64,000 nt of DNA from Schizochytrium sp. TIO01 (Eukaryota; Protista; Bigyra: Labyrinthulomycetes): NCBI GenBank assembly GCA_004764695.1, contig SMSO01000031.1:8662761-8726760 (forward strand), given 5' to 3'. The notes under the pieces were generated by a model. The model was not told where the DNA came from and made no database searches. It saw only the letters and a program-made list of their open reading frames with translations. Position numbers and translations under genes: made by a program. Of this stretch, positions 6,934 to 28,177 are shown one piece after another (position 1 is the stretch's first letter; each line of letters opens with the position of its first letter).

Positions 6934-8673
6934 ATGCGGCGGTCCAGTCTCCCGACCTTGGCACGCTCTCTGGCAGTGCTCGTGCTGATCGTGGCTGTGG
7001 CTTCTAGCAGCGTAAATGCCTCTGAGGATGTCACACATGACCTCTCTGGAGAAAACTACGGAAGCACATCAAGGTTGATGTCAACCACGAAGGAATCAAC
7101 CTCAAATTCGTTGACCTCGATGGCAGCGTCAGACTCATCCAAATCACCACCATCTTCGAAAGATGCTGCTGAGGAAGAGGACGTGTGCTCAGACGACACG
7201 TGGCTTCCAACGGATGATCCTGACTTCAAGCCATACGTTTTTGCGAGCGTGTTTCTCGTGTTCATGGGTGGCACTATGAGTGGTTTGCAGGCAGGTATGA
7301 TGCAACTCGACTCGCCCACGATCAAGTCGATGCGTGAGACAGCCTCACCAGTGTTCTTGTGGTTAATTGACCTTCTTGAGCCTCTGATTCGGAGAAGACA
7401 CCTCACCCTAGTTACGCTACTGGTGTCCAACGCAGTTGCAATGGAAACGCTCCCGATTTTCCTAGACGTTTTGGTGCCCAAGGCTATAGCTATCTTGCTT
7501 TCGGTAAGTATGGTGTTACTTTTTGGCGAGATTGTGCCCCAGGCACTGTGCTTACGATGGCCTGGCGAAATTTCGTGCATTTTTACACCTTTGGTCTGGG
7601 TGCTGCTGACAATATTTGCTCCAATTGTGTACCCGATCGCCTGGCTACTGGATCATCTCTTGGGCGACGAACACCACGCAATCTACTCAAGGGCAGGTCT
7701 TCATGAGCTGGCTCGCCAGCAAGCTAAGCTGACTGGACATGGTGTCCTTGAAGATGACGAGCTGGATATTATCACAGGAACGCTTGAGTTGCACGACAAG
7801 GTGGCCAACGACATATGTATCTCTCTCGATCACGCCTTCAAAGTTAGTTATCATGACACTCTCACAGATAAGGTTCTCAGAGATATCTTGGATCATGGCC
7901 ACAGCCGCGTACCTGTTTGGAAGGACTCGCCATCCAATATTATCGGAATCTTACTTGTCAAGCACCTCATTCGTATTGCCCCTGATGCAGAAATAAGGGT
8001 GCGTGATCTCCAAATTATGCCACTTCTAGTCACTGATCAAAACGTTTCTCTCTTTGCTCTACTACGCAGATTTCGCACGGGTGCTTGTCATATGGCTGCT
8101 GTGAAGCAGGTGGTTGACGTTGCTTCAGAGATTTCGCCATCACCTACTTCTGCTCGAGGCCGCGCTGCGTCTAGTTTTACCCGGAACCCAAGTGCATTGT
8201 CTCGTGGTCGCGGAGCTACAGAAGCGGAGGAGGAAATACACCTCAGCTGCATCAATCAGATTCCCATTAATGCAGTGGGTATTTTGACTCTTGAGGACAT
8301 CATCGAAGAGCTCCTAAAGCATGACATTGAGGACGAGACAGATCGTTGGGCACCCGTCAATGATGAACTTGATCAGCGCATGTCCAAGGTACGCAACCTT
8401 CGTGACAACCTTCTAAGTTCCTTAGAGAAGGGTGAACAGCGCAGTTCAAATAATACAGGAACTCAAGGAGAACGGGACAGCCTTTTGCGGCAGGATTCTG
8501 ATCAGCTTACCTCTGGATCCGCTAATTCAAGCGCAAAATCTGGTACATCCCAGACCAATCGACCCGCAAGTTTAAGTTATGGTTCCTTGAATGAATTCAG
8601 TGCACACGGTGGTTCTCGAGGTTCAACTCCCTCTGAAGATGGTGGAACTCTTCTGCGCATGATCCGAAAATAG
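6934..8673 (+). CDS. CNNM/DUF21 + CBS-pair metal (Mg2+) transporter
   Basis: N-terminal signal-like hydrophobic segment; DUF21 motifs GGTMSGLQAG, LVTLLVSNAVAMETLPIFLD and LLFGEIVPQA; CBS motifs GHSRVPVW, IIGILLVKHL, HMAAV and GILTLEDIIEELL; Ser-rich tail. Confidence 0.93.
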   Translation: MRRSSLPTLARSLAVLVLIVAVASSSVNASEDVTHDLSGENYGSTSRLMSTTKESTSNSLTSMAASDSSKSPPSSKDAAEEEDVCSDDTWLPTDDPDFKPYVFASVFLVFMGGTMSGLQAGMMQLDSPTIKSMRETASPVFLWLIDLLEPLIRRRHLTLVTLLVSNAVAMETLPIFLDVLVPKAIAILLSVSMVLLFGEIVPQALCLRWPGEISCIFTPLVWVLLTIFAPIVYPIAWLLDHLLGDEHHAIYSRAGLHELARQQAKLTGHGVLEDDELDIITGTLELHDKVANDICISLDHAFKVSYHDTLTDKVLRDILDHGHSRVPVWKDSPSNIIGILLVKHLIRIAPDAEIRVRDLQIMPLLVTDQNVSLFALLRRFRTGACHMAAVKQVVDVASEISPSPTSARGRAASSFTRNPSALSRGRGATEAEEEIHLSCINQIPINAVGILTLEDIIEELLKHDIEDETDRWAPVNDELDQRMSKVRNLRDNLLSSLEKGEQRSSNNTGTQGERDSLLRQDSDQLTSGSANSSAKSGTSQTNRPASLSYGSLNEFSAHGGSRGSTPSEDGGTLLRMIRK

Positions 8674-9488
8674 TGAGCTTATCGCGATGCTCTGATGTTT
8701 ATCCGCAGCCGTGGATACTTCCATGATCATGACATTCATTCCACTACGCAAAGTTTCTGAACTACCTGAATAACCAAACTATCTCTTGTGCAGAGATTGC
8801 TCTAACTCTGCACCATGAAGTATCTTTTTTTTGTAATATTGTGGAGGAAAATATGCAAAAAAATGAAAAAAGAAAAAAAGTGGGGAAAAGCGGGAGGTTG
8901 CACTTTTAGTTAACCGGGTGAATATACAAGCAAGTACTAATTTACTTCTAGTACTCTTTTCAATCATCATTCAATACTGACTCCTTCACCTGTAGATACC
9001 CTAATGAGCCAAGAATTACTGCAAGGATGGGGTCCTTTTTGGGATGGCACATCTCGTATATCCACGAGTTTCCGAAGGCTCCATTGATGACAACTTGAAT
9101 CATATCTTGGGTGGTCATGAATCATCAAGAATCCAGAAATTGTGAGGAAACCATATCAGCTCAAGAAATTCTAGTTCTCGGTTCTTGTTTCCCGCCGAAA
9201 TCAGGTTTTCTTCTTCTAAGAGGAATAAATAAACAGTGTTATTACCAGGAAATGGCAGGCTCCACGAGTATGCAAACTGCCCATCGTCTCTTCTTTTTAC
9301 ATAGTGGCACAGCATACAGAAAGCGAGATAGACTTGAAGCAATTCCAGAGAATTCCAAGCAATGAAGAAGTTACAAGTAAACCAGCAAAGTAGATTATGT
9401 TTTTTTTAGCTTTTTGAAATCAAGAATCCCCAAACTAAAACAGATTCACATTTTGAAAGTAGGAAGGTACTCTTTTCCCAAGCTTCAT

Positions 9489-12400
9489 TTAAATATGAAG
9501 CTGGCGCCCAGACGACATTGTCTTTAAGCGACCGGGAGTTATACGGGAACCCCGCCTGGCCCCACCTTGATTCAACCTATATCCTCCGTTGAGTACTTCA
9601 GTTACTGATTGATCGCCTTCACCACCATGTTCATCGACCATATCAACGTTTTGTCCAGTGAGGATAATATTAGCATTTGGCATGTCAGCACGACGAGGTT
9701 CGGCTGCTTCAAGAACCGCTTCCGCACGATCAGCTTCTGGAGCGAACTCGAGGTTTTTCAGAGCCCACTGAACTGTTCGCACTCTTTCATGCAATAATAA
9801 TACAATTGAAAGTTCGGTAATCAGCTCGTTGTAGTCGGAACGATGAGCAATGCCATATCTTACCAAGTGTTCATCAACACGTGCAAGCTTCTCATGAAGT
9901 GGATCGCGAAGGTCATAATAGTAAAACTGTGGTCGCTCAACAGCAGTTATTTTATCACACAAAGCATTCCAATGTTCCTGAATAGAGTAAACTTTTTCTA
10001 AAGGGAGCGCACGTGGCCGTGGAGGCTCGAATAAGATGTCAGCAAGCTCCATAACAAGTTCAGAAAAGTTATGAACGCCGCCGCGTTCCGGCTTATCTAA
10101 AGAAAAGCGAAGCAGTAAGAACTCAAGCCGGGTCCGAGGTGTTAGTGAGAGCGTGTTTATATCATCAGCCTCTAGTTGCTGAGAATCAGTCTGACGTCTC
10201 TTTTGCAAGCACTCTAGTAGCATACTTTGATCATGCTCCTTGGCGACGGCACGGATCAAGTCCGCTTGTGATGAAATTGCATTGATTCGAAATTTACCGC
10301 CGGCGCCCTCCATAAATTTTTCGATAGGTAATTGAACCTCAGCTTTCATACCAACTGTCACATTGAAAAGGGATGATCGATGCTTCCCCAAGGCATCGAA
10401 ATTTCGCGAGCGCCACTTTAACTCTTGCATATGCTTTTCTAGGTCGTCCGCTACGTCTATTTCATCATCATCATCATCAATAGAACCTTGCTTTGCCGTT
10501 CGAGCCTTTTCGCGATGCGGAAGCTCTTTTCCGACTCTCATACTTTTCCGCTTGATGTCTTGTGCACGGCTTGCACTGCTATAAAGGTCCTCCAGAGCTA
10601 CTGAAACAGGATTATAAGGTTCAGCAATATGAAAAAGACCTTCCCGGAGTAAGCTAGAGCGATAGACAAGATCTTGCTTCATCTGACGTTTTGTTTCCTC
10701 AGCAAGACCTACGCTAACAATTCGTTCGGCGCTAAATGCGCTTAAGGTTGAGATAAGACCAATGCCGATTAGCATTAGAATAAACATTAAAATCTGTGTC
10801 TCGATCTGTGTCACCTTATAATCTCCATAACCAACCGTGGTGACGGTTACGAGGGCAAACCAAATCACATTGCTAAAATCTCGAAAATCTTCTTGATGGT
10901 TCTGCTCAAAAATTTTGATGAACACTGTGCAGATAAGAATGATTACTACCACAAATGAGGCTAAATAAGCCATTGGCTTACGGACCATCAAAGAGATAAA
11001 AATAGCCTGTTGGGTGAACCGGCGGTACAAACGAAACAAACGAAAACCCTTAAATAATCTCATTGCATCAGGAAACCACACCGCTGTCAAAGGGATCTCA
11101 GTCAGCATCGCAGGTATATCATACCAATTATCACTAAAAAATGACCTTACAGTCGGCAGTTCCTTTTTGTCTCTTGTTAAGCATCGAAACGTGAAATCAA
11201 GAAAGAAAATGCCAAAGTTAAACACATCGATCCAAATCAGAACTCGCTCTGTTTTAGCCGAAACACCTCCATAAGGAATCAAAGGTGCAACAGCAATAAT
11301 GATAGATATCACTGTTAACAATAGGACAAATGTTTCTGTAGCAACCCCAACACTCTTACTACGCTCTATTGCATGATCGTACCAAACTTGTGCTCGAAGG
11401 TCGGCTTCTTGCTCTTCTATCTCTGCATTATACTTATTACGAAAAGCAGCATTGATAGCTACAGCGGAAAGTCGCCGTGCTACATTTCCAATACGCGTTT
11501 TTCTAGTAATCGCCTTTGAAATCTTACTTTGCAGAGCTCGGTCTTGGGATAAAGTTTGAGGACCATTTTTTTGTGCTACTGGAGATAAATGAACAATTGG
11601 ACTACTGACAATGTTTGCCTGTGTTCCAGAACGACCAAACAAATTTACAGAGCTATCACTGTGTTCTTTTTCTGAGTTTATGTCGCCTCCAGCTCGATGT
11701 GGGCCAACCTTAGCTGTTCTCTGCTGCTGCACAGCCGAATAACGATGAACCTCAGTGGTGTTCTGATTACTCTCTTGCTCATGAATTTTCTGAGCGATTA
11801 GACTCCACCGCCTCTCGAGATATTCACGCATCTTAATGTGAAATAGAAATAATGCAGCGCATACTACCATGAATGTGACAAACACACAATACATGATTAA
11901 GTCGTCGTTCAGTCCAGGAAAATCAATAAAATCTCGTTCGTCAGCATACCCATCACCATCGGAGTCAAATGAAAATCCATAATTTACTGGAAAGTCATCC
12001 AAAATATCGAAAAGACCATCATTGTCTTTGTCTAAATCCATAAGCTCAAAAACTTTTGGTCCACCTTCATATAACTCGGCAAGCCATACAACAGTGTCCC
12101 GAAACACTGAAGCGTCGATTATTCTTTTTGTGTCATTGTATTCTGGACGCAGAGATGGTGCTTCAAGAGCACAATGCACTATTTGAAGAGCATCGGGACT
12201 CCTTTCTGTTGCTGCAGGAAGACTTTTAATTCGAATCAGTCGAAGCTCATCGTCGATTCCATTTGAGTTTTCCCCACGAAGAAAGTAAGTAAGGGCACTT
12301 TCGGAATCTCGGTGGCTAAGACTTATTTCTCGAGGCCACGTACTATTCTCAAGATCTTGAAAGTTACGAGCATTAGAGATCTCAGCAAAGCGAATCTTGT

Positions 12401-13595
12401 GCTCATTAGTGGCTGAATTCCTGACCACTACCAGTAAGAAATTACTGGCAAGAGTCATATCGATCAACTCATCAAATCCTTCATCTATCCAATCTGCGTT
12501 CCACAGTTTTGTATTATTCATACTTGGGAGTTGCACTATTGAGATAGACTCATCAGCCGCATTTCTCCATCCTGCGAAGCAGATTTCGGAGGATGTTGAC
12601 GACGAAGACAACGACGACGAGGAAGTCTCAACATGACTGGCTATGGGTAGCGAAGCATTGCGAGCTAGAATTTGAACAGAGTAATCAGAATTACTCAAGG
12701 TTCTCGCAAAAATCCCTGTGTTTCCATCCGAGTCAGTCGCCTGGTATATAATTGTATTTTCTCCGCAGTAAACGAGACTTTGTCTTATTATGATTGAGTC
12801 AATGTCTGTTAAATTGTCAGGTCCACTTAATGGCTCTCCGGAGTTTATCATATCTTCGGGTAAATTGGATAGTTTCTGGCGATCATACACCCGGATCACA
12901 GTATGCTCTTCAGACAAATATTCAATCCAGGCAAGATAATTACCTTCTGGACTTGCAAGGATAGAACGTGGATTCTTTGTATTTGTGGCAACGGGTCGAA
13001 GTTCTTCTGCATATGGCTTTTGAAAAATCCGAAAAATATAACATTGCTCGGAAAGAATCTCGTCATCTGCCGCATGTGGGACTTCTGGAGCTCCATCCAT
13101 GTCAAACGAGCAGGTAGCGACTCCCTCTTCGTAATCGGTGTAGTATAGCTCGGTATACTCCTGGTCCATGATAAGAGAGAAAACATGGAGATTTCCGTCA
13201 ATCGCATTTTGAGAGCAATTGGAGGAGTTGGACAGATTCCATACTTCGCAAGTATCGAAATAGCTAATAGCGTCCCCCGTGAATGTCAGGATTGAAGGTC
13301 TACTATGATGATCCCATCTCGCTGTGTGCTCGTTTCCGGCATCCAGTACTTGTGTCGTCAGCCGTTTAGGTGCGAGTGGATGTGTGATTGTTCGAATTGC
13401 TTTATAATCGCGTTCTTTGAAGGATACATAACTTGGATTGCAGACTTCCACTCCGTTTACATATACAGGTCGCCACCATGTACTTTTAGGCACAAATGCC
13501 TCCGCTTGTTGTGGTGCCAGCAGGTGAACTAAGTTCGTTACAATAATCAGGAGGGCTTCTACCGAGTACCTGGATGACTGGCATCGACACCTCAT
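9489..13595 (-). CDS. 6TM voltage-gated-type K+ channel fused to a large N-terminal ectodomain with TSP type-3-like repeats and an extra TM helix
   Basis: 1368-aa ATG ORF. K+ filter TTVGYGD at 10821-10841; S4-like MRLFKGFRLFRLYRR; S1-S3, S5 and S6 hydrophobic helices; N-terminal signal-like peptide; DKDNDG and DSDGDG motifs (about 11945-12040) just before a TM helix IMYCVFVTFMVVCAALFLF. Confidence 0.9.
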   Translation of the reverse strand: MRCRCQSSRYSVEALLIIVTNLVHLLAPQQAEAFVPKSTWWRPVYVNGVEVCNPSYVSFKERDYKAIRTITHPLAPKRLTTQVLDAGNEHTARWDHHSRPSILTFTGDAISYFDTCEVWNLSNSSNCSQNAIDGNLHVFSLIMDQEYTELYYTDYEEGVATCSFDMDGAPEVPHAADDEILSEQCYIFRIFQKPYAEELRPVATNTKNPRSILASPEGNYLAWIEYLSEEHTVIRVYDRQKLSNLPEDMINSGEPLSGPDNLTDIDSIIIRQSLVYCGENTIIYQATDSDGNTGIFARTLSNSDYSVQILARNASLPIASHVETSSSSLSSSSTSSEICFAGWRNAADESISIVQLPSMNNTKLWNADWIDEGFDELIDMTLASNFLLVVVRNSATNEHKIRFAEISNARNFQDLENSTWPREISLSHRDSESALTYFLRGENSNGIDDELRLIRIKSLPAATERSPDALQIVHCALEAPSLRPEYNDTKRIIDASVFRDTVVWLAELYEGGPKVFELMDLDKDNDGLFDILDDFPVNYGFSFDSDGDGYADERDFIDFPGLNDDLIMYCVFVTFMVVCAALFLFHIKMREYLERRWSLIAQKIHEQESNQNTTEVHRYSAVQQQRTAKVGPHRAGGDINSEKEHSDSSVNLFGRSGTQANIVSSPIVHLSPVAQKNGPQTLSQDRALQSKISKAITRKTRIGNVARRLSAVAINAAFRNKYNAEIEEQEADLRAQVWYDHAIERSKSVGVATETFVLLLTVISIIIAVAPLIPYGGVSAKTERVLIWIDVFNFGIFFLDFTFRCLTRDKKELPTVRSFFSDNWYDIPAMLTEIPLTAVWFPDAMRLFKGFRLFRLYRRFTQQAIFISLMVRKPMAYLASFVVVIILICTVFIKIFEQNHQEDFRDFSNVIWFALVTVTTVGYGDYKVTQIETQILMFILMLIGIGLISTLSAFSAERIVSVGLAEETKRQMKQDLVYRSSLLREGLFHIAEPYNPVSVALEDLYSSASRAQDIKRKSMRVGKELPHREKARTAKQGSIDDDDDEIDVADDLEKHMQELKWRSRNFDALGKHRSSLFNVTVGMKAEVQLPIEKFMEGAGGKFRINAISSQADLIRAVAKEHDQSMLLECLQKRRQTDSQQLEADDINTLSLTPRTRLEFLLLRFSLDKPERGGVHNFSELVMELADILFEPPRPRALPLEKVYSIQEHWNALCDKITAVERPQFYYYDLRDPLHEKLARVDEHLVRYGIAHRSDYNELITELSIVLLLHERVRTVQWALKNLEFAPEADRAEAVLEAAEPRRADMPNANIILTGQNVDMVDEHGGEGDQSVTEVLNGGYRLNQGGARRGSRITPGRLKTMSSGRQLHI

Positions 13596-14550
13596 TCCCG
13601 CAAGTTCGTGTCGTCGCGAACCCTAGCAAAAGGATTCGCTCGCCGCCATGTGTCTTGGGTCTACTCCCGCTGATTTGCGACCCCATCTATCCACCTCTGT
13701 GCTTTTCCTGCATTCACTACAGCAAGCGAGCACCACTATATGTAGCAGTTGACCACCGCCTCTGTAGATAATTGTATAAACATGGTATAGAAGTAGTCCC
13801 CGCCGTAACGGCTAGTCCTCGGAAGTGTACTTTCATAGTATCAAGGTTCATAGGTGCCTATTGTTAGTGTTCAAGCTATGTAAGGTTATGCAGCTATATG
13901 TCCTCGTCGCTGAGTTATGGTTTACCTGTCGCTAGTGAACCTGCAAGTTCAGGAAAGCTGGTTGGCAAGAACGATCCCCTACTGGTAATTGCACTTGCAA
14001 AAAGAAATAAAATTACTTAATACTTTGCACACCAGGACATTTGAGTTGTTGAACCAGTTTTTGTGCAATTACAGGCAAGGCAAGGCAAGCTCTCTCCTGG
14101 TCTATTCTAATCAGCTTCCAGTAATACAGCAACCCGTGGCAACTCTCGCTGGTTCTCGGGCTACTGTTTTTCACAGCCGGTTTGCATCTCCTTCTTTTTT
14201 TGGATTGGAGATGAGACAATCAAAAGAAAAAAGAAACCGAAGAAAGAAACTACATCAATGTTTGATGATTAATCACGCCACTAAAAGAGAAATAACAGAA
14301 TCACCCTTCAAAATACGAAGTATCTTCACATGTGCTGATCCATCGCTCTTTGTTGAAAAAGCAGCTTTTCAACCTCTTCCAACGACACGAGGACAAGCAT
14401 CTCTGGACAAAATCCAGAACGAGCTAGGTAACCCTTCTTGATGATTTCTTTTTTTTTCAACGACGACTTCAAGTTGAGAAAAAAATGAAAACGAGAGAAA
14501 TGTTCTGAATGTTCTATAAGATCCACGTATTCTTAGTGGACTAGCTTGTT

Positions 14551-23440: not shown

Positions 23441-24190
23441 CTGCCTGATCTCACGCTGGGTTGGTTTCGTCGCTGAGTTGATTGAATTTGATGGATTTCT
23501 TGATTGATTGATTGATTGGTTTCTTTCTTGTTTGATGTTCGCTTGTTCGTCGCAGGCACGATTTCCTGACCGCGACTACGCCCACAGTGGAGATGCCGTT
23601 GTGGATCTCTCCCGCAGTGAGCCTCCACACAGAGTCACACAGCTTCCCGCAGCCAGGTGCTGAGGCTCTGTTCCGCAATGCAGTTCATCTCTTATTTGTT
23701 GCCGCTACTTGCACCCTGAATAGCCTTCGTGGTGGCCAGCTTCTTTGCGCCTACGTTGCAGACAGAGAGTCACGCTGACGCCTTTTCTGCGCAAGGGTCG
23801 AGGTGAAGCGCAGTGCTGTCGTCAGATGGTTACCTAGGTTCTTAGAATTTTTAATTCTTACTTCAAGTTGTTTAGTGTTGTTATGTTTCAAGTTATTCTT
23901 TTGTTGTTTATTTATTGTTTTATTTTTGAAACTTATTTTCAAGTTTGAGCATTAAAAGGCATATTTTGTAAGATAGCAGTTACCTAGCAAGTAACTAACG
24001 ATTTATGTTACTGTTATTGTTTATGAGAAAAGAGGGGAAAATGTAATGTCAAAAGCATCATTGGGTATTTCTTGACTTGCATAATACGACACGGAGAAAA
24101 GAGTAATCGCGATCGAAGTCGTTTGAGGCAAAACTCTAACATACTCGAGTCGCCGAGAGCACCTTCGGCATCGTTGGTGTCCTCGTGACC

Positions 24191-27100
24191 ATGAAATCCT
24201 CGTGCTGTGGAGTGCTCTGTAGCCGCGGAAGTTGCTCATCCGGTGACGGCATGCTCACCATAAGAAGGAGGCCTAGCCGAAGACTTCATGCCACACTCCC
24301 GAAGACCTTTGCAACGACCTTGGTCCTTATTCTTGTGGTCCTTGCACTCGCCCTGAACCGTAGCACGGCGCTGAAAGTGCCCAGTGTGAGAAGGTCTGCG
24401 ACAAGTATTAATGATGCTGCTTCAGAACCTGCTTGGGCCGTTCAACAGAACCAGAAAATTGACCCACAAGACCCTCCTGGAACGCAGGATAGAGCGACTT
24501 CTAGAGTAATTGTCATTGGAGCAGGGTACTCAGGACTCTCAGCAGCATGTGAGCTGCGCAGACTTGGACATGATGTCTTGGTCTTAGAGAAGAATGACTA
24601 TGTGGGTGGCAGAGCTCATCAGTTTGAAGTCAAAGCTGATAACGGACAGACCTTCAAGTTCGATGCAGGGCCCAGCTGGTACTGGATGCCTGAGGTCTTC
24701 GATCGATTTTTTGCACGATATGGCCGTAAAGTTGAAGAGTTTTACACGCTAGAAAGGCTTGATCCAGCGTACAGAATCATTCGTTCTGAAGAAGAAGCAA
24801 CACTTGATGTGCCGGGGGCCTCGGAGGAGGCCTTTCTCAGCTGGGCACGCAAGCTTGAAGGTGAGTCAAAAGGAGGCCTCCTAGACCGCATGATGGACGA
24901 AGCTAAAGAAAAGTATGAAGAGGGTATTTTTAAATGGATATGGCACCCGATGGTGTCCATTTGGGAAATGGTCGATTTCAACCTTATGCGTGCACCTTTC
25001 CAGTACGACATGTTCAATGGCTACCTGGCACATCTTCAAAAGTATATTTCTAATTCAGATCTACTTACGGCGCTAAAATGGCCTGTTATCTTCCTTGGTG
25101 CGTCACCACACTCTGCACCAGCAATGTATTCCCTTATGACGTATGGCGGCCATGCACTTGGAACCTACTACCCTAGTGGAGGGTTAAGCCGCCCTGTCAT
25201 GGCAATGGCCGAGCTAGCCGAAGAGCTTGGTGCAGAAATTCGCCTAAACGCTGAAGTAGATCACTTTGAACTTGATGAGAATCGGCAAGGAATTCGTGCC
25301 GTATGTATGTCAGATGGAAGCTGCGTCGAAGGCAGTGGAGTAGTAGCCTCTGCTGACTATCATCACGTGGAGCAAAACCTTTTGCCGCCGCACCTAAGGC
25401 GATACTCCGAAGCGTACTGGGACTCGCAAATTATGTCTCCAAGTTGTCTACTGTTCTACCTTGGTTTCGATCGCAGCATCAACGGTTTACTGCACCACAC
25501 CTTTTTTTTTGACATTGACTTGGACAAGCACCTCAGAGCAGCCTTTGCAGACCACACATGGACTACAGAACCTGCATTTTACGTTTCAGCGACATCCAAA
25601 ACAGACCCTTCCGTGACTTCGGGAGATGGTGATGGAGAGGCGCTGTTTGTTCTTGTTCCTGTCTCCTACCAGCTCAATGGGACTGATAGTGATGCACTAC
25701 GCGAGGAACTTTTGAACATTATCATGAAGCGAATGGAGCAAAACCTTGATCAGCCATTGCGTGAGTGGCTAGTTTATAGCCAATCCTATGGAATGTCTGA
25801 CTTTGAAAATGACTTTCATTCTTACCGTGGTAATGCCTTTGGACATGCCAATACTTTAGCGCAATCACTTGTGCTAAAGCCATCAATGGATTCCCTTGCT
25901 ACTAATTTAGTCTTTGCTGGTCACCTTACCAATCCCGGGCCAGGTGTTCCACCGGCAATTGTTTCTGGCGCTGTCTCAGCCGAACTTCTGCATAACAAGC
26001 TTGAGCGCGCCCATGGTAGCGCAGCCATGTATTCGCATTTTTTGAGCCTCCTCGTGGGGTTATTTAGTAGTAGTTGTGTAGTATTATACCTCTGCTCGAC
26101 ACGAATCGTGTCTTATATTGAATGCGTCAAACTCTTATATGAACACGGCCGAACTTATTTTGCAGCAGCAACCCTCATGAGCCCGCTCGCTTTCTTGGAT
26201 ACTGCTGCTATGTATGGTTTGTTCCGCGTTGCTGATGATTATGTTGACAATACTTCTGAAGCAAATCAACGGCAGCAAAATCTCGATGCGTTTATCGCAG
26301 ACTTCTGGAATTGCTGGGAGAGGAAAAAAGGTGACTACAATAAACACCCAACGCTACCCGCTATTATTGAGTCAGCTCACCGTAGAGGCTATCCCAAAGA
26401 ACTTTTTGATCGCTTTTTTCGCTCCATGCGTATGGACTCAACGTCTCAATTAGTCTGCAGAACAATGGATGATACTATGGCGTATATGGAAGGCAGTGCG
26501 GCCGTGATTGGGGAGTTCATGCTTCCTATTTTGATGCCAGATGCGACTCCTGACGTATATCGTCGCGCCTTACCACACGCACGGGATCTTGGGCTTGCCT
26601 TCCAAATCACGAATATGCTTCGCGATATTGGAGAGGACTACAATCTAGGCCGCCAGTACATTCCTGTGGAAATATGTAAGCGCCATGGAATAGACGGCCC
26701 GCTCGTAAGCCACCATCAGCCGGGCTTTAGCAGCCTCATGGAAGACATGTTTTCCTTTACAGATCATCTTTACGCAAGTGCCGATATTGGCATTGGGATG
26801 TTGCCAGAGAAGGTTCGAGATGTTATTCGGGTGGCCCGAATCGCATATCACCGTATCCACGACAAAATCCGCCAAGCAGAATATGATATTTTCTCTGACC
26901 GGCGGCGCGTCCCACTTGTCGAAAAACTGGGCATCCTCGTGAATACGGTTCCTGCATCTAAACTTACTCGAATTGCTGTCACAGAGATTTTCTGTGCGAC
27001 AATCTACCTTCTCACGCGCCCATACATTGCTCTAGTATGGTTCGGTGCCTTCTGGGCATCTTGGTTTTCATGGCCACAATGCACATATTTGAAATTTCAC

Positions 27101-28177
27101 CTTGTGTTTATTATTCCTCCACTTACCTTACTGATGTACAATGCATATCAGCGTGCGGTTGCGGATAAACAACTCAGATTTTTCCGCCAAGCTGTTTTCT
27201 GGGGTGGCATTCTCTGCATTGTGGCGACTGTTTATACCACCCCTTGGGACAACTACCTCGTTTATAGTACGGTTTGGAACTACCCACCAGAACGTATCTT
27301 ATTCGTTCTGGGTTATGTTCCTATTGAAGAATACATGTTTTTCTCGCTGGAGACGATGCTTGTTGTTGCAGTTTGGCTACATGTATTCAAAAGTACGACT
27401 CTGCAAGAGGAAGTTCAGAAGCCAGCTCGGGGGGGGGGTATACTGCCACTATTGGGTCTCATCGTTGCATGGTGTGTTGGTTTTTACATGTTGCAGCATG
27501 AGCAGACCTTGTACATGGGCCTAATTTTGAGCTGGGGCATGCCCGTGCTCATACTGCAGTGGGTTCTAGGCGCCCACGTCCTTCAAAAGCACGTTCGCCC
27601 TGTGACAATAGTGATACTATGCTCGTTCTCATATCTGTGTATAGTTGACACTTGGGCGATTCAACAGGGCATCTGGCATCTTAGTTCGCGAAATTTGTTA
27701 CAACCTGTAGGCAACTATACTCTGCCTCTAGAAGAGGCCCTGTTCTTTCTGGTGACATCAACCATGTGTACATGGGGCCTCACACTGGCAATTGCCCTCT
27801 GGGGACGGCACATTGGTATCGCAATTTCTCTTCCATCGTTACACGCTCAACCAAGGCGAACGCACCACATGTGGCGTCTTACTCATATTGTGAAGCATGG
27901 AGTTATTTTATTCACAGTTATTGCTCACCCATCGATGTATCGATTTATTCCAGTTTCCCTAGTGACTTGCTTACGGTTTTTGGCTTGGACAGATCTAGTA
28001 GCTGCCCTTCTCCTGCTGTCATCCTGGGAGATCCTTCAATACTTTGGGTTCGCTTTGCTTCTCTTTTTCACCCCATACCCAGTCTTGACTGTTCTGATCT
28101 ATTTGTTGATTTTCGGCGCGGTCTTACCTAAACATGGAGTAGATTCTGATAGTTTACCTTTGTATAAAAAAGCCTAA
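24191..28177 (+). CDS. crtIBY: Trifunctional carotenoid synthase: phytoene desaturase (CrtI) - phytoene synthase (CrtB) - membrane lycopene cyclase (CrtYc/d)
   Basis: CrtI FAD motif VIVIGAGYSGLSAA...EKNDYVGGRA, FDAGPSWYWMP and TNPGPGVPPAIVSG; CrtB motifs RVADDYVD and AFQITNMLRDIGED; two CrtY repeats TTPWDNYLV...PIEEYMFF and VDTWAIQQGIW...PLEEALFF. Intronless. Start is ATG 24191 or 24251. Confidence 0.96.
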   Translation: MKSSCCGVLCSRGSCSSGDGMLTIRRRPSRRLHATLPKTFATTLVLILVVLALALNRSTALKVPSVRRSATSINDAASEPAWAVQQNQKIDPQDPPGTQDRATSRVIVIGAGYSGLSAACELRRLGHDVLVLEKNDYVGGRAHQFEVKADNGQTFKFDAGPSWYWMPEVFDRFFARYGRKVEEFYTLERLDPAYRIIRSEEEATLDVPGASEEAFLSWARKLEGESKGGLLDRMMDEAKEKYEEGIFKWIWHPMVSIWEMVDFNLMRAPFQYDMFNGYLAHLQKYISNSDLLTALKWPVIFLGASPHSAPAMYSLMTYGGHALGTYYPSGGLSRPVMAMAELAEELGAEIRLNAEVDHFELDENRQGIRAVCMSDGSCVEGSGVVASADYHHVEQNLLPPHLRRYSEAYWDSQIMSPSCLLFYLGFDRSINGLLHHTFFFDIDLDKHLRAAFADHTWTTEPAFYVSATSKTDPSVTSGDGDGEALFVLVPVSYQLNGTDSDALREELLNIIMKRMEQNLDQPLREWLVYSQSYGMSDFENDFHSYRGNAFGHANTLAQSLVLKPSMDSLATNLVFAGHLTNPGPGVPPAIVSGAVSAELLHNKLERAHGSAAMYSHFLSLLVGLFSSSCVVLYLCSTRIVSYIECVKLLYEHGRTYFAAATLMSPLAFLDTAAMYGLFRVADDYVDNTSEANQRQQNLDAFIADFWNCWERKKGDYNKHPTLPAIIESAHRRGYPKELFDRFFRSMRMDSTSQLVCRTMDDTMAYMEGSAAVIGEFMLPILMPDATPDVYRRALPHARDLGLAFQITNMLRDIGEDYNLGRQYIPVEICKRHGIDGPLVSHHQPGFSSLMEDMFSFTDHLYASADIGIGMLPEKVRDVIRVARIAYHRIHDKIRQAEYDIFSDRRRVPLVEKLGILVNTVPASKLTRIAVTEIFCATIYLLTRPYIALVWFGAFWASWFSWPQCTYLKFHLVFIIPPLTLLMYNAYQRAVADKQLRFFRQAVFWGGILCIVATVYTTPWDNYLVYSTVWNYPPERILFVLGYVPIEEYMFFSLETMLVVAVWLHVFKSTTLQEEVQKPARGGGILPLLGLIVAWCVGFYMLQHEQTLYMGLILSWGMPVLILQWVLGAHVLQKHVRPVTIVILCSFSYLCIVDTWAIQQGIWHLSSRNLLQPVGNYTLPLEEALFFLVTSTMCTWGLTLAIALWGRHIGIAISLPSLHAQPRRTHHMWRLTHIVKHGVILFTVIAHPSMYRFIPVSLVTCLRFLAWTDLVAALLLLSSWEILQYFGFALLLFFTPYPVLTVLIYLLIFGAVLPKHGVDSDSLPLYKKA

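Follow-up and report, generated by a model that had tools for sequence, protein, structure and literature searches.

By textbook account the N-termini of Kv-type channels lie in the cytosol, and any large extracellular parts come from separate auxiliary subunits. A gene from the labyrinthulomycete Schizochytrium sp. TIO01 is predicted to combine both in one polypeptide. It lies on the minus strand (9489..13595) of the 64,000-nucleotide stretch of DNA analysed here, which we call the window (GenBank assembly GCA_004764695.1, contig SMSO01000031.1, positions 8,662,761 to 8,726,760) and in whose coordinates positions are given unless marked otherwise, and it consists of one intronless open reading frame (ORF) of 1368 codons plus stop. 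The predicted protein has a signal peptide, a large β-propeller, a stalk of two TSP3-type repeats and an additional membrane helix (TM0), all placed ahead of a Kv-type S1–S6 core and a family-specific tail, and from sequence comparison this combination appears to be a domain architecture that is conserved and new to the superfamily of voltage-gated K+ channels.

Domain architecture and membrane orientation

The ORF begins at the first in-frame ATG, nine codons past an in-frame TAG, and stays open throughout its length, over the whole of which the protein can be aligned with its orthologues; in DNA of ~44% G+C a chance origin of such a frame is impossible. An earlier note, made from the letters of the window alone, had described a single intronless ORF with a signal-like peptide, a ~530-residue ectodomain rich in Cys and sequons that was possibly a β-propeller, two TSP3-like DxDxDG motifs, one membrane helix, a linker, S1–S6 with a basic S4 and an intact K+ filter, and a tail of ~400 residues lacking RCK or CNBD domains, and each of these parts was found in its place.

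At the N-terminus, residues 1–33 (13497..13595) form a predicted signal peptide in which basic residues come first, a hydrophobic stretch follows and small residues occupy positions -3 and -1; it ends with LLAPQQAEA at residue 33, and cleavage is predicted between AEA and FVPK. All full-length members of the family described below likewise start with signal-peptide-like segments, which are unrelated in sequence and end at a common alignment column, where the residues at -3 and -1 are again small and a conserved FV(K/P)(K/R) follows. In P0004 the segment MAAALLAALLAATLLACAGPARA is followed by FVKR (cleavage between ARA and FVKR), in P0002 the boundary lies between SQG and FVKK, and in another member it lies between VEG and WIPQ.

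The region that would follow this cleavage site contains eight Cys and eight N-x-S/T sequons (residues 34–565), against three sequons in the other ~800 residues. Its larger part, residues ~34–515 (12051..13496), is predicted to fold as a seven-bladed β-propeller. Run on a 22-row family alignment, AlphaFold2 returned a model with a mean predicted local distance difference test score (pLDDT) of 81.5 and a predicted template modelling score (pTM) of 0.79, all-β with ~32 strands and then one long helix corresponding to TM0. A single-sequence prediction of residues 1–608 had a pLDDT of 36 and was discarded. Foldseek searches of the PDB with the ectodomain model found β-propellers exclusively. In a VIA-align structural scan of 48,161 chains, which was independent of Foldseek, the best match was 2gop_B, the propeller of a trilobed protease (Z 21.7, root mean square deviation 3.1, 277/304 residues aligned), followed by S9-peptidase propellers, the BP39L lectin, Sec12, coronin and many WD40 proteins, all at Z 18–21 and effectively tied. 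Sec12 was aligned over 308/344 and WDR61 over 280/293 residues, and we take the top-ranked propellers to come nearly all from seven-bladed families. A seven-bladed propeller is thereby strongly supported as a model, with the number of blades deduced from the near-complete coverage of seven-bladed targets, and the tied rows favour no propeller subfamily or ligand.

Neither WD40, PD40 nor other Pfam repeat profiles matched the propeller, and a PDB sequence search with the ectodomain likewise gave no match, with the ESM Atlas returning sub-threshold language-model similarities of 0.85–0.88 to WD40/PD40 and TSP3 clusters. Matches of residues ~276–342 to bacterial Ig-like/HYR repeat proteins (P0006, P0009 and P0013) were rejected as compositional, this being a Ser/Thr-rich loop of low model confidence. 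Cys52, Cys277, Cys339 and Cys475 are kept family-wide, and C116/C127 and C162/C185 are each gained or lost as pairs, as would be expected of disulfides.

Between the propeller and the membrane lies a stalk (residues 516–565; 11901..12050) of two putative Ca2+-binding repeats of the bacterial TSP3 type, LDKDNDGLFDILDDFP and FDSDGDGYADERD, with a 22-residue period. The DxDxDG motifs of the stalk, DKDNDG (residue 522) and DSDGDG (residue 544), are in register with bacterial-type TSP3 repeats, and 11 positions are invariant in nine members (D522, D524, D526, D530, D533, F535, P536, D544, D546, D548 and G549). Partners of the segment in phmmer searches carry Pfam TSP_3 (PF02412) or TSP3_bac (PF18884), and a TSP3-repeat protein of Thalassotalea (P0048) shows 53% identity over 38 residues, in register with its successive 22-residue repeats. 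The two Pfam profiles themselves gave no match at E ≤ 1 in the window protein or in any of the nine family members, and the repeats are named TSP3-type by similarity; judging from other TSP3 and DxDxDG loops, they may well bind Ca2+. A Cys-x(n)-Cys insert stands between the repeats and TM0 in a paralogue of the window protein and in the diplonemid and Cyanophora proteins.

The chain would then cross the membrane at TM0 (residues 566–588; 11832..11900), which has a Kyte-Doolittle hydropathy peak of 2.7, coincides with the long helix of the AlphaFold2 model and occupies a constant position in all family members. It is followed by a predicted cytosolic linker of ~165 residues (589–753; 11337..11831; ~170 in the earlier estimate), which varies in length between orthologues and probably acts as a spacer. 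Together TM0 and S1–S6 make seven membrane helices, and since S1 of a canonical Kv core starts, and S6 ends, in the cytosol, the extra helix puts the N-terminal domain on the opposite side. The charges around TM0 fit an N-out/C-in orientation, with 8 D/E against 1 K/R in the 20 residues preceding it and 4 K/R in the flank after it, and most family members are basic directly after this helix. Because of the seven helices, the conserved signal peptides, the paired cysteines and the flank charges, read by the positive-inside rule, there is strong support from these predicted features for a propeller that faces outward, or at least away from the cytosol, in line with the extracellular N-terminal region of the earlier note.

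Residues 754–960 (10716..11336) would form the Kv-type core, with a voltage sensor and K+ pore. Pfam Ion_trans (PF00520) matched residues 754–951 with 37.2 bits (cut-off 25), and Ion_trans_2 (PF07885) matched residues 882–959 with 49 bits (cut-off 22.5). The S4 segment, MRLFKGFRLFRLYRRF, is basic at every third position (R-x-x-K-x-x-R-x-x-R-x-x-RR), and in nine sequences R852 and R855 are invariant and the other R/K positions are largely kept. S2 (IFFLDFTFR, that is F-x-x-D-x-x-x-R) and S3 (NWYD, within NWYDIP) fit the Kv charge-transfer centre, the F-x-x-D/E of S2 being found in 8/9 family sequences and the acidic residue of S3 in 9/9. The TVGYGD filter, at residue 920, is kept in 8/8 members that reach the pore, and S6 contains a GIG hinge but no PVP motif of the kind seen in Shaker-type channels. 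Sequence matches of the core in the PDB were modest (E 1e-5 to 1e-7), and included a Listeria K+ channel, KvAP, Kv1.2, Kv4.2 and KCNQ; the motifs suggest a voltage-dependent, K+-selective current. No T1/BTB domain (BTB_2) was matched at E ≤ 1 in the window protein, which also lacks a KChIP-binding N-terminus. The database name of the orthologue in Hondaea, 'Kv subfamily D member 2' (Kv4.2-like), is unjustified and misleading, because there is no T1 domain; it mirrors no more than a weak best match of the core (E about 1e-5).

Beyond S6, the C-terminal part of ~400 residues gave no match to RCK, TrkA, BK_channel_a, CNBD or other Pfam and NCBIfam profiles, to PDB sequences or to the ESM Atlas. 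Within it, sequence conservation marks out residues ~1061–1300 (9696..10415; ~240 residues) as a likely family-specific cytosolic domain, 72% identical to that of Hondaea and 23–27% identical to those of the diplonemid proteins and the paralogue, with conserved blocks GAGGKFRI..SQADLIRAV and PRTRL.FLLLRF...NF.E....IIFEP.

Family distribution and transcript evidence

The Hondaea fermentalgiana protein (P0002, 1374 residues) is a colinear, end-to-end orthologue of the window protein, with 53% identity over 1355 residues. By region, identity between the two is 75% in S1–S6, 76% in the stalk, 48% in the propeller, 30% in TM0 and 28% in the linker, and from these values and that of the tail it follows that both ectodomain and tail are under constraint; the contrast of propeller and stalk with the linker indicates purifying selection on the ectodomain. 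Across the family, identity in the propeller ranges from 13 to 48% and in the linker, in which the frame is open in every member, from 10 to 28%, while the stalk, at 42–76%, is more strongly conserved than any other extracellular part.

When 1.84 billion representatives were searched exhaustively by phmmer, with the ectodomain alone as query, 30 matches were obtained, and the long ones all have Ion_trans downstream. The family sources are an MMETSP transcript (P0004), marine metagenome and Logan contigs (the P0005 cluster), three genes of Cyanophora paradoxa (P0012, P0014 and P0026), and three diplonemid transcriptomes, from Namystynia karyoxenos, Diplonema japonicum and D. ambulator. A script run on the long relatives located in every one a signal peptide, an ectodomain of ~450–500 residues, twin DxDxD motifs 22 residues apart, a hydrophobic helix ~20–45 residues further on and then the channel. 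These sequence comparisons strongly support the design as a conserved gene family of labyrinthulomycetes, diplonemids and a glaucophyte, neither a one-off nor an artefact. A word-indexed search found nothing further with the family alignment as query, and with the paralogue ectodomain it found TSP3-repeat proteins only. A quick maximum-likelihood tree, unrooted and with the careful search unfinished, grouped the sequences by taxon into diplonemid, Cyanophora and labyrinthulomycete-type clades together with the long-branched paralogue.

A profile search of the organism's own 64-Mb genome found exactly two full-length members, and 17 further matches that were pore-only. The second full-length member is the paralogue (G000:C13:3796409-3801436, corresponding to L008:3410-8437, plus strand), which lies on another contig, encodes 1676 residues from its first ATG and is much diverged; it shares the predicted architecture from the propeller and twin TSP3 repeats through TM0 and the Kv core (with TITTVGYGD) to the conserved tail, and its stalk has the Cys-containing insert. 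The hydrophobic N-terminal segment of the paralogue begins at residue ~123 of its ORF, leaving the true start or a signal-anchor ambiguous, and it has a long extra C-terminal extension. Many pore-only loci lie in very long open frames, e.g. G000:C34:223104-223271 (2890 residues) and G000:C30:3982917-3983492 (1383 residues), which suggests that this genome holds a rich set of channel fusion architectures.

Several relatives show features of their own. Short metagenomic proteins with a propeller, TSP3 repeats and TM0 (P0032, P0024, P0011 and others) are either stand-alone genes or fragments cut at introns or contig ends, and were treated as fragments. The Cyanophora paradoxa protein P0012 (1955 residues) opens with a C-terminal fragment of a Peptidase_M13 domain, which is probably a gene-model merger and not a real extra domain. 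P0015 of Namystynia karyoxenos (1811 residues) and P0039 of Diplonema japonicum (1445 residues) have long extra C-terminal extensions, and P0015 has a weak PDZ-like match (22 bits, just under the cut-off of 23.2) that hints at scaffold binding in its lineage.

For the window organism itself, we used four sequencing runs of ~35–48 million letters each, compared with ~64 million for genome-sized runs; none is recorded as RNA. All four contain a deep (40–121x) contig of ~2.6 kb with its end at 9386–9406, on the 3' side of the neighbouring CNNM-type gene, and because of this contig and their smaller size the runs are probably RNA assemblies. Contigs of depth 2–6 are spread along the channel ORF from 9385 to 13474 and show no splice joints in the gene, and none was seen upstream of its ATG. 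Two of them, 11338–11865 (X1) and 11821–12062 (X2), cross the segment from the TSP3 repeats through TM0 into the linker. These contigs are weak support for a single message, and the stronger case comes from the Trinity and MMETSP transcripts of four other organisms, which encode the fused ORF.

A short upstream ORF (ATG, 7 codons and TAG; 13623–13649, minus strand), 54 bases upstream of the channel ATG and sharing its frame, may be a translational regulator or may be due to chance. The CNNM/CBS-domain (Mg2+-transporter-like) gene lies at 6934–8673 on the plus strand with its transcript end near 9386–9406, and in the probable RNA runs it is 10–40 times deeper than the channel gene. Its contigs stop ~85–100 bases short of the channel stop codon, and the two convergent genes nearly abut. 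Elsewhere in the window, an ORF of 1330 residues at 24185–28177 (plus strand) joins an Amino_oxidase domain of the phytoene-desaturase type to an SQS_PSY (phytoene synthase) domain. Its product resembles the multifunctional carotenoid synthase of thraustochytrids, in keeping with a genome of thraustochytrid type.

Possible roles of the ectodomain

We think it somewhat likelier than its opposite, with a probability of roughly 60%, that the gene encodes a Kv channel with a covalently built-in, auxiliary-subunit-like ectodomain, by which the channel would be tuned or anchored in response to extracellular Ca2+ or a ligand. The layout of the chain is strongly supported by the predictions above: cleavage of the signal peptide takes the N-terminus out of the cytosol, a disulfide-stabilised propeller stands outside the cell, or in a lumen, on a stalk of two TSP3-type acidic loops, TM0 returns the chain to the cytosol, and the variable linker leads to the Kv core, with the conserved tail in the cytosol. 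On the proposed mechanism, subunits would tetramerise as in other Kv-type channels, so that four propellers would stand above the pore, and each TM0 would pack against a voltage-sensor domain. The state of this four-propeller crown would reflect Ca2+ occupancy of the TSP3 loops, a bound surface, matrix or soluble ligand, or both, and might be relayed through TM0 as a shift in voltage dependence or kinetics; the crown may also fix the channel at a surface site. Channel opening would let K+ out, and the cell would repolarise or hyperpolarise.

Several observations weigh against this account. In the AlphaFold2 model pLDDT is low for the stalk and for two loops of the propeller, the blade count and cysteine pairing come from secondary structure and matched folds and not from coordinates, and no propeller sequence-profile match hints at a ligand. 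Likewise, the hydrophobic core of the signal peptide is of modest strength, with a hydropathy of 1.56 and with E13 and N21 lying within it, and the RNA origin of the four runs is a guess, their coverage of the gene being shallow and never spanning it in a single contig. K+ selectivity, voltage gating, and Ca2+ and ligand binding are all read from motifs, and the channel could sit in an internal membrane with its propeller in the lumen. The earlier note had proposed gating or anchoring of the channel through surface contact, Ca2+ or a ligand outside the cell; this is pure inference, and a built-in auxiliary subunit acting on kinetics or trafficking, or a lumenal organelle location, would fit equally well.

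Among the alternatives, the ectodomain might be an anchor or targeting device that binds the wall, a scale, the matrix, or a partner in the flagellum or ectoplasmic net, and so clusters an ordinary Kv channel with no effect on its gating. Propeller-plus-TSP3 combinations are indeed typical of prokaryotic cell-surface and adhesion proteins, the propeller is far less conserved than the stalk and pore, as expected of a lineage-specific binding surface, and in the Kv4.2 complex the extracellular domain of DPP6 is flexible above the channel, with modulation reportedly exerted via its transmembrane helix and a short intracellular segment (PMC8566240). However, in all three supergroups TM0 and the stalk hold an invariant place next to the channel, and conservation of the stalk matches that of the pore, which suggests more than a tether, and we regard a pure anchor as unlikely. 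A location in an internal membrane, such as that of the contractile vacuole, endolysosome, endoplasmic reticulum or Golgi, with the propeller sensing lumenal Ca2+ or cargo, seems to us less probable again. All that a signal peptide shows is that the protein enters the secretory pathway, lumina rich in Ca2+ would be a suitable setting for TSP3-type loops, the lineages that bear the family are all protists with elaborate endomembrane systems, and no result separates the plasma membrane from an organelle; a full S4 with a charge-transfer centre is, however, more typical of plasma-membrane Kv channels, and the sequons and disulfide-type cysteines are compatible with either location.

The pore itself might also be something other than a voltage-gated K+ channel, that is a voltage-insensitive, leak or tail-gated one with vestigial S4 charges, and here the conserved tail could be the actual gate, the Shaker-type PVP is missing from S6 and similarity to the Kv profiles is modest, at 37–49 bits. 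Set against this are the two invariant S4 arginines and the largely kept remainder of the S4 charges, together with the conservation of the S2 motif, the S3 acid and the filter, and we consider such a pore improbable. Only a very small chance remains, in our view, that the long ORF is not the functional unit, in that an internal start (M590, for example, among the internal Met residues), a separate transcript or shedding of the ectodomain would yield an ordinary six-helix Kv channel. The poor conservation of the linker and the lack of a single RNA contig over the whole gene, at low depth, would allow this, but the linker frame is open throughout the family, independent Trinity and MMETSP transcripts encode the fusion, the probable RNA contigs X1 and X2 run contiguously across the junction, and retention of the fusion across three supergroups would be hard to explain otherwise.

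A more far-reaching proposal is that these proteins form a new receptor-channel class, in which the propeller and a Ca2+-loaded TSP3 stalk would directly sense an external cue, for example a glycan of prey or substrate, contact with a surface, or Ca2+, and set the voltage sensor via TM0; we hold this to be doubtful. If it were true, a single protein would connect outside signals with the membrane potential of flagellated marine protists, and the origin of the design would lie among early eukaryotes, unless it had spread between supergroups.

Comparison with known channel systems

Full-text searches of the literature, of incomplete coverage, found no paper on a Kv-type channel to which an extracellular propeller is fused, and this is absence of evidence only. 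The view of the earlier note that no described family has this architecture has to be qualified on two counts: the proteins are already in public databases under automatic Kv4.2-like names, and a functional analogue built from separate chains, Kv4 with DPP6, is well known. The window protein has no DPPIV_N or Peptidase_S9 Pfam match, and its resemblance to DPP6 is architectural only. The ectodomain of DPP6 is an eight-bladed propeller joined to an alpha/beta-hydrolase domain, and is not known to contain TSP3 repeats. In complexes of Kv4 with DPP6 or DPP10, as we predict for the window channel, each voltage sensor is accompanied by an extra helix that carries a large extracellular β-propeller-containing domain, and in Kv4.2-DPP6S the single helix of the auxiliary subunit contacts S1/S2 and alters activation, inactivation and recovery (PMC8566240). 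Kv4.2 was also among the PDB matches of the core, and propellers of the DPP4 family and S9 peptidases were among the structural matches of the ectodomain. In contrast, DPP6 is a separate type II protein (N-in), whereas the propeller and helix of the window protein are part of the channel chain and of type I (N-out).

BK/Slo1 channels offer a second parallel, having an extra helix before S1 that brings the number of helices to seven and leaves the N-terminus outside, although the likeness of TM0 to this helix is one of analogy and not of shown homology. The S0 helix of BK adjoins the voltage sensor, and gamma subunits of the LRRC26 type contribute a repeat domain that lies outside the cell and is borne on one helix. 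BK itself has a short extracellular peptide and two RCK domains, unlike the window protein with its folded ectodomain of ~530 residues and no detected RCK. The CatSper beta, gamma, delta and epsilon subunits, which are single-pass proteins with β-propeller-containing ectodomains, form a canopy over a voltage-gated-type channel, with their helices beside the voltage sensors; they are, however, separate polypeptides, specific to animal sperm and serving a Ca2+ channel. No sequence match or ranked structural match to CatSper auxiliary subunits was seen in the Foldseek and VIA-align results.

Fusion of a propeller to a channel in one chain is found in the TRPW channels of choanoflagellates and other protists, which join an N-terminal seven-bladed propeller to a transmembrane domain of the voltage-gated superfamily, are patchily distributed across protists and have been proposed to be sensory receptors (bioRxiv 10.64898/2026.06.15.732144). 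Their propeller is an intracellular WD40 one, with no signal peptide or extra helix, and their pore is of the TRP type, whereas the window channel has a predicted extracytosolic propeller with no WD40 profile match, and a K+ filter. The stalk, in turn, has its counterparts in the surface proteins of bacteria and archaea, among which propeller-plus-TSP3 combinations are common and which share the twin 22-residue repeats (D-x-D-x-D-G-x-x-D-x-x-D-x-F-P) in register (PF02412/PF18884). These prokaryotic proteins have many repeats and no channel, unlike the eukaryotic window protein, which has exactly two repeats that fall below the Pfam threshold.

Taken with these systems, the family would be a case of convergent or ancestral evolution of a built-in auxiliary subunit in three eukaryotic supergroups, and a candidate for a direct connection from extracellular cues to the membrane potential of the ecologically important marine labyrinthulomycetes and diplonemids, besides correcting a misleading database name. 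In Kv4-DPP6, BK-gamma and CatSper, the question of how gating is modulated requires work with multi-protein complexes; as a natural fusion, the window channel would offer one gene, with a fixed 4:4 stoichiometry, in which to study how an extracellular crown and a helix next to the voltage sensor modulate gating.

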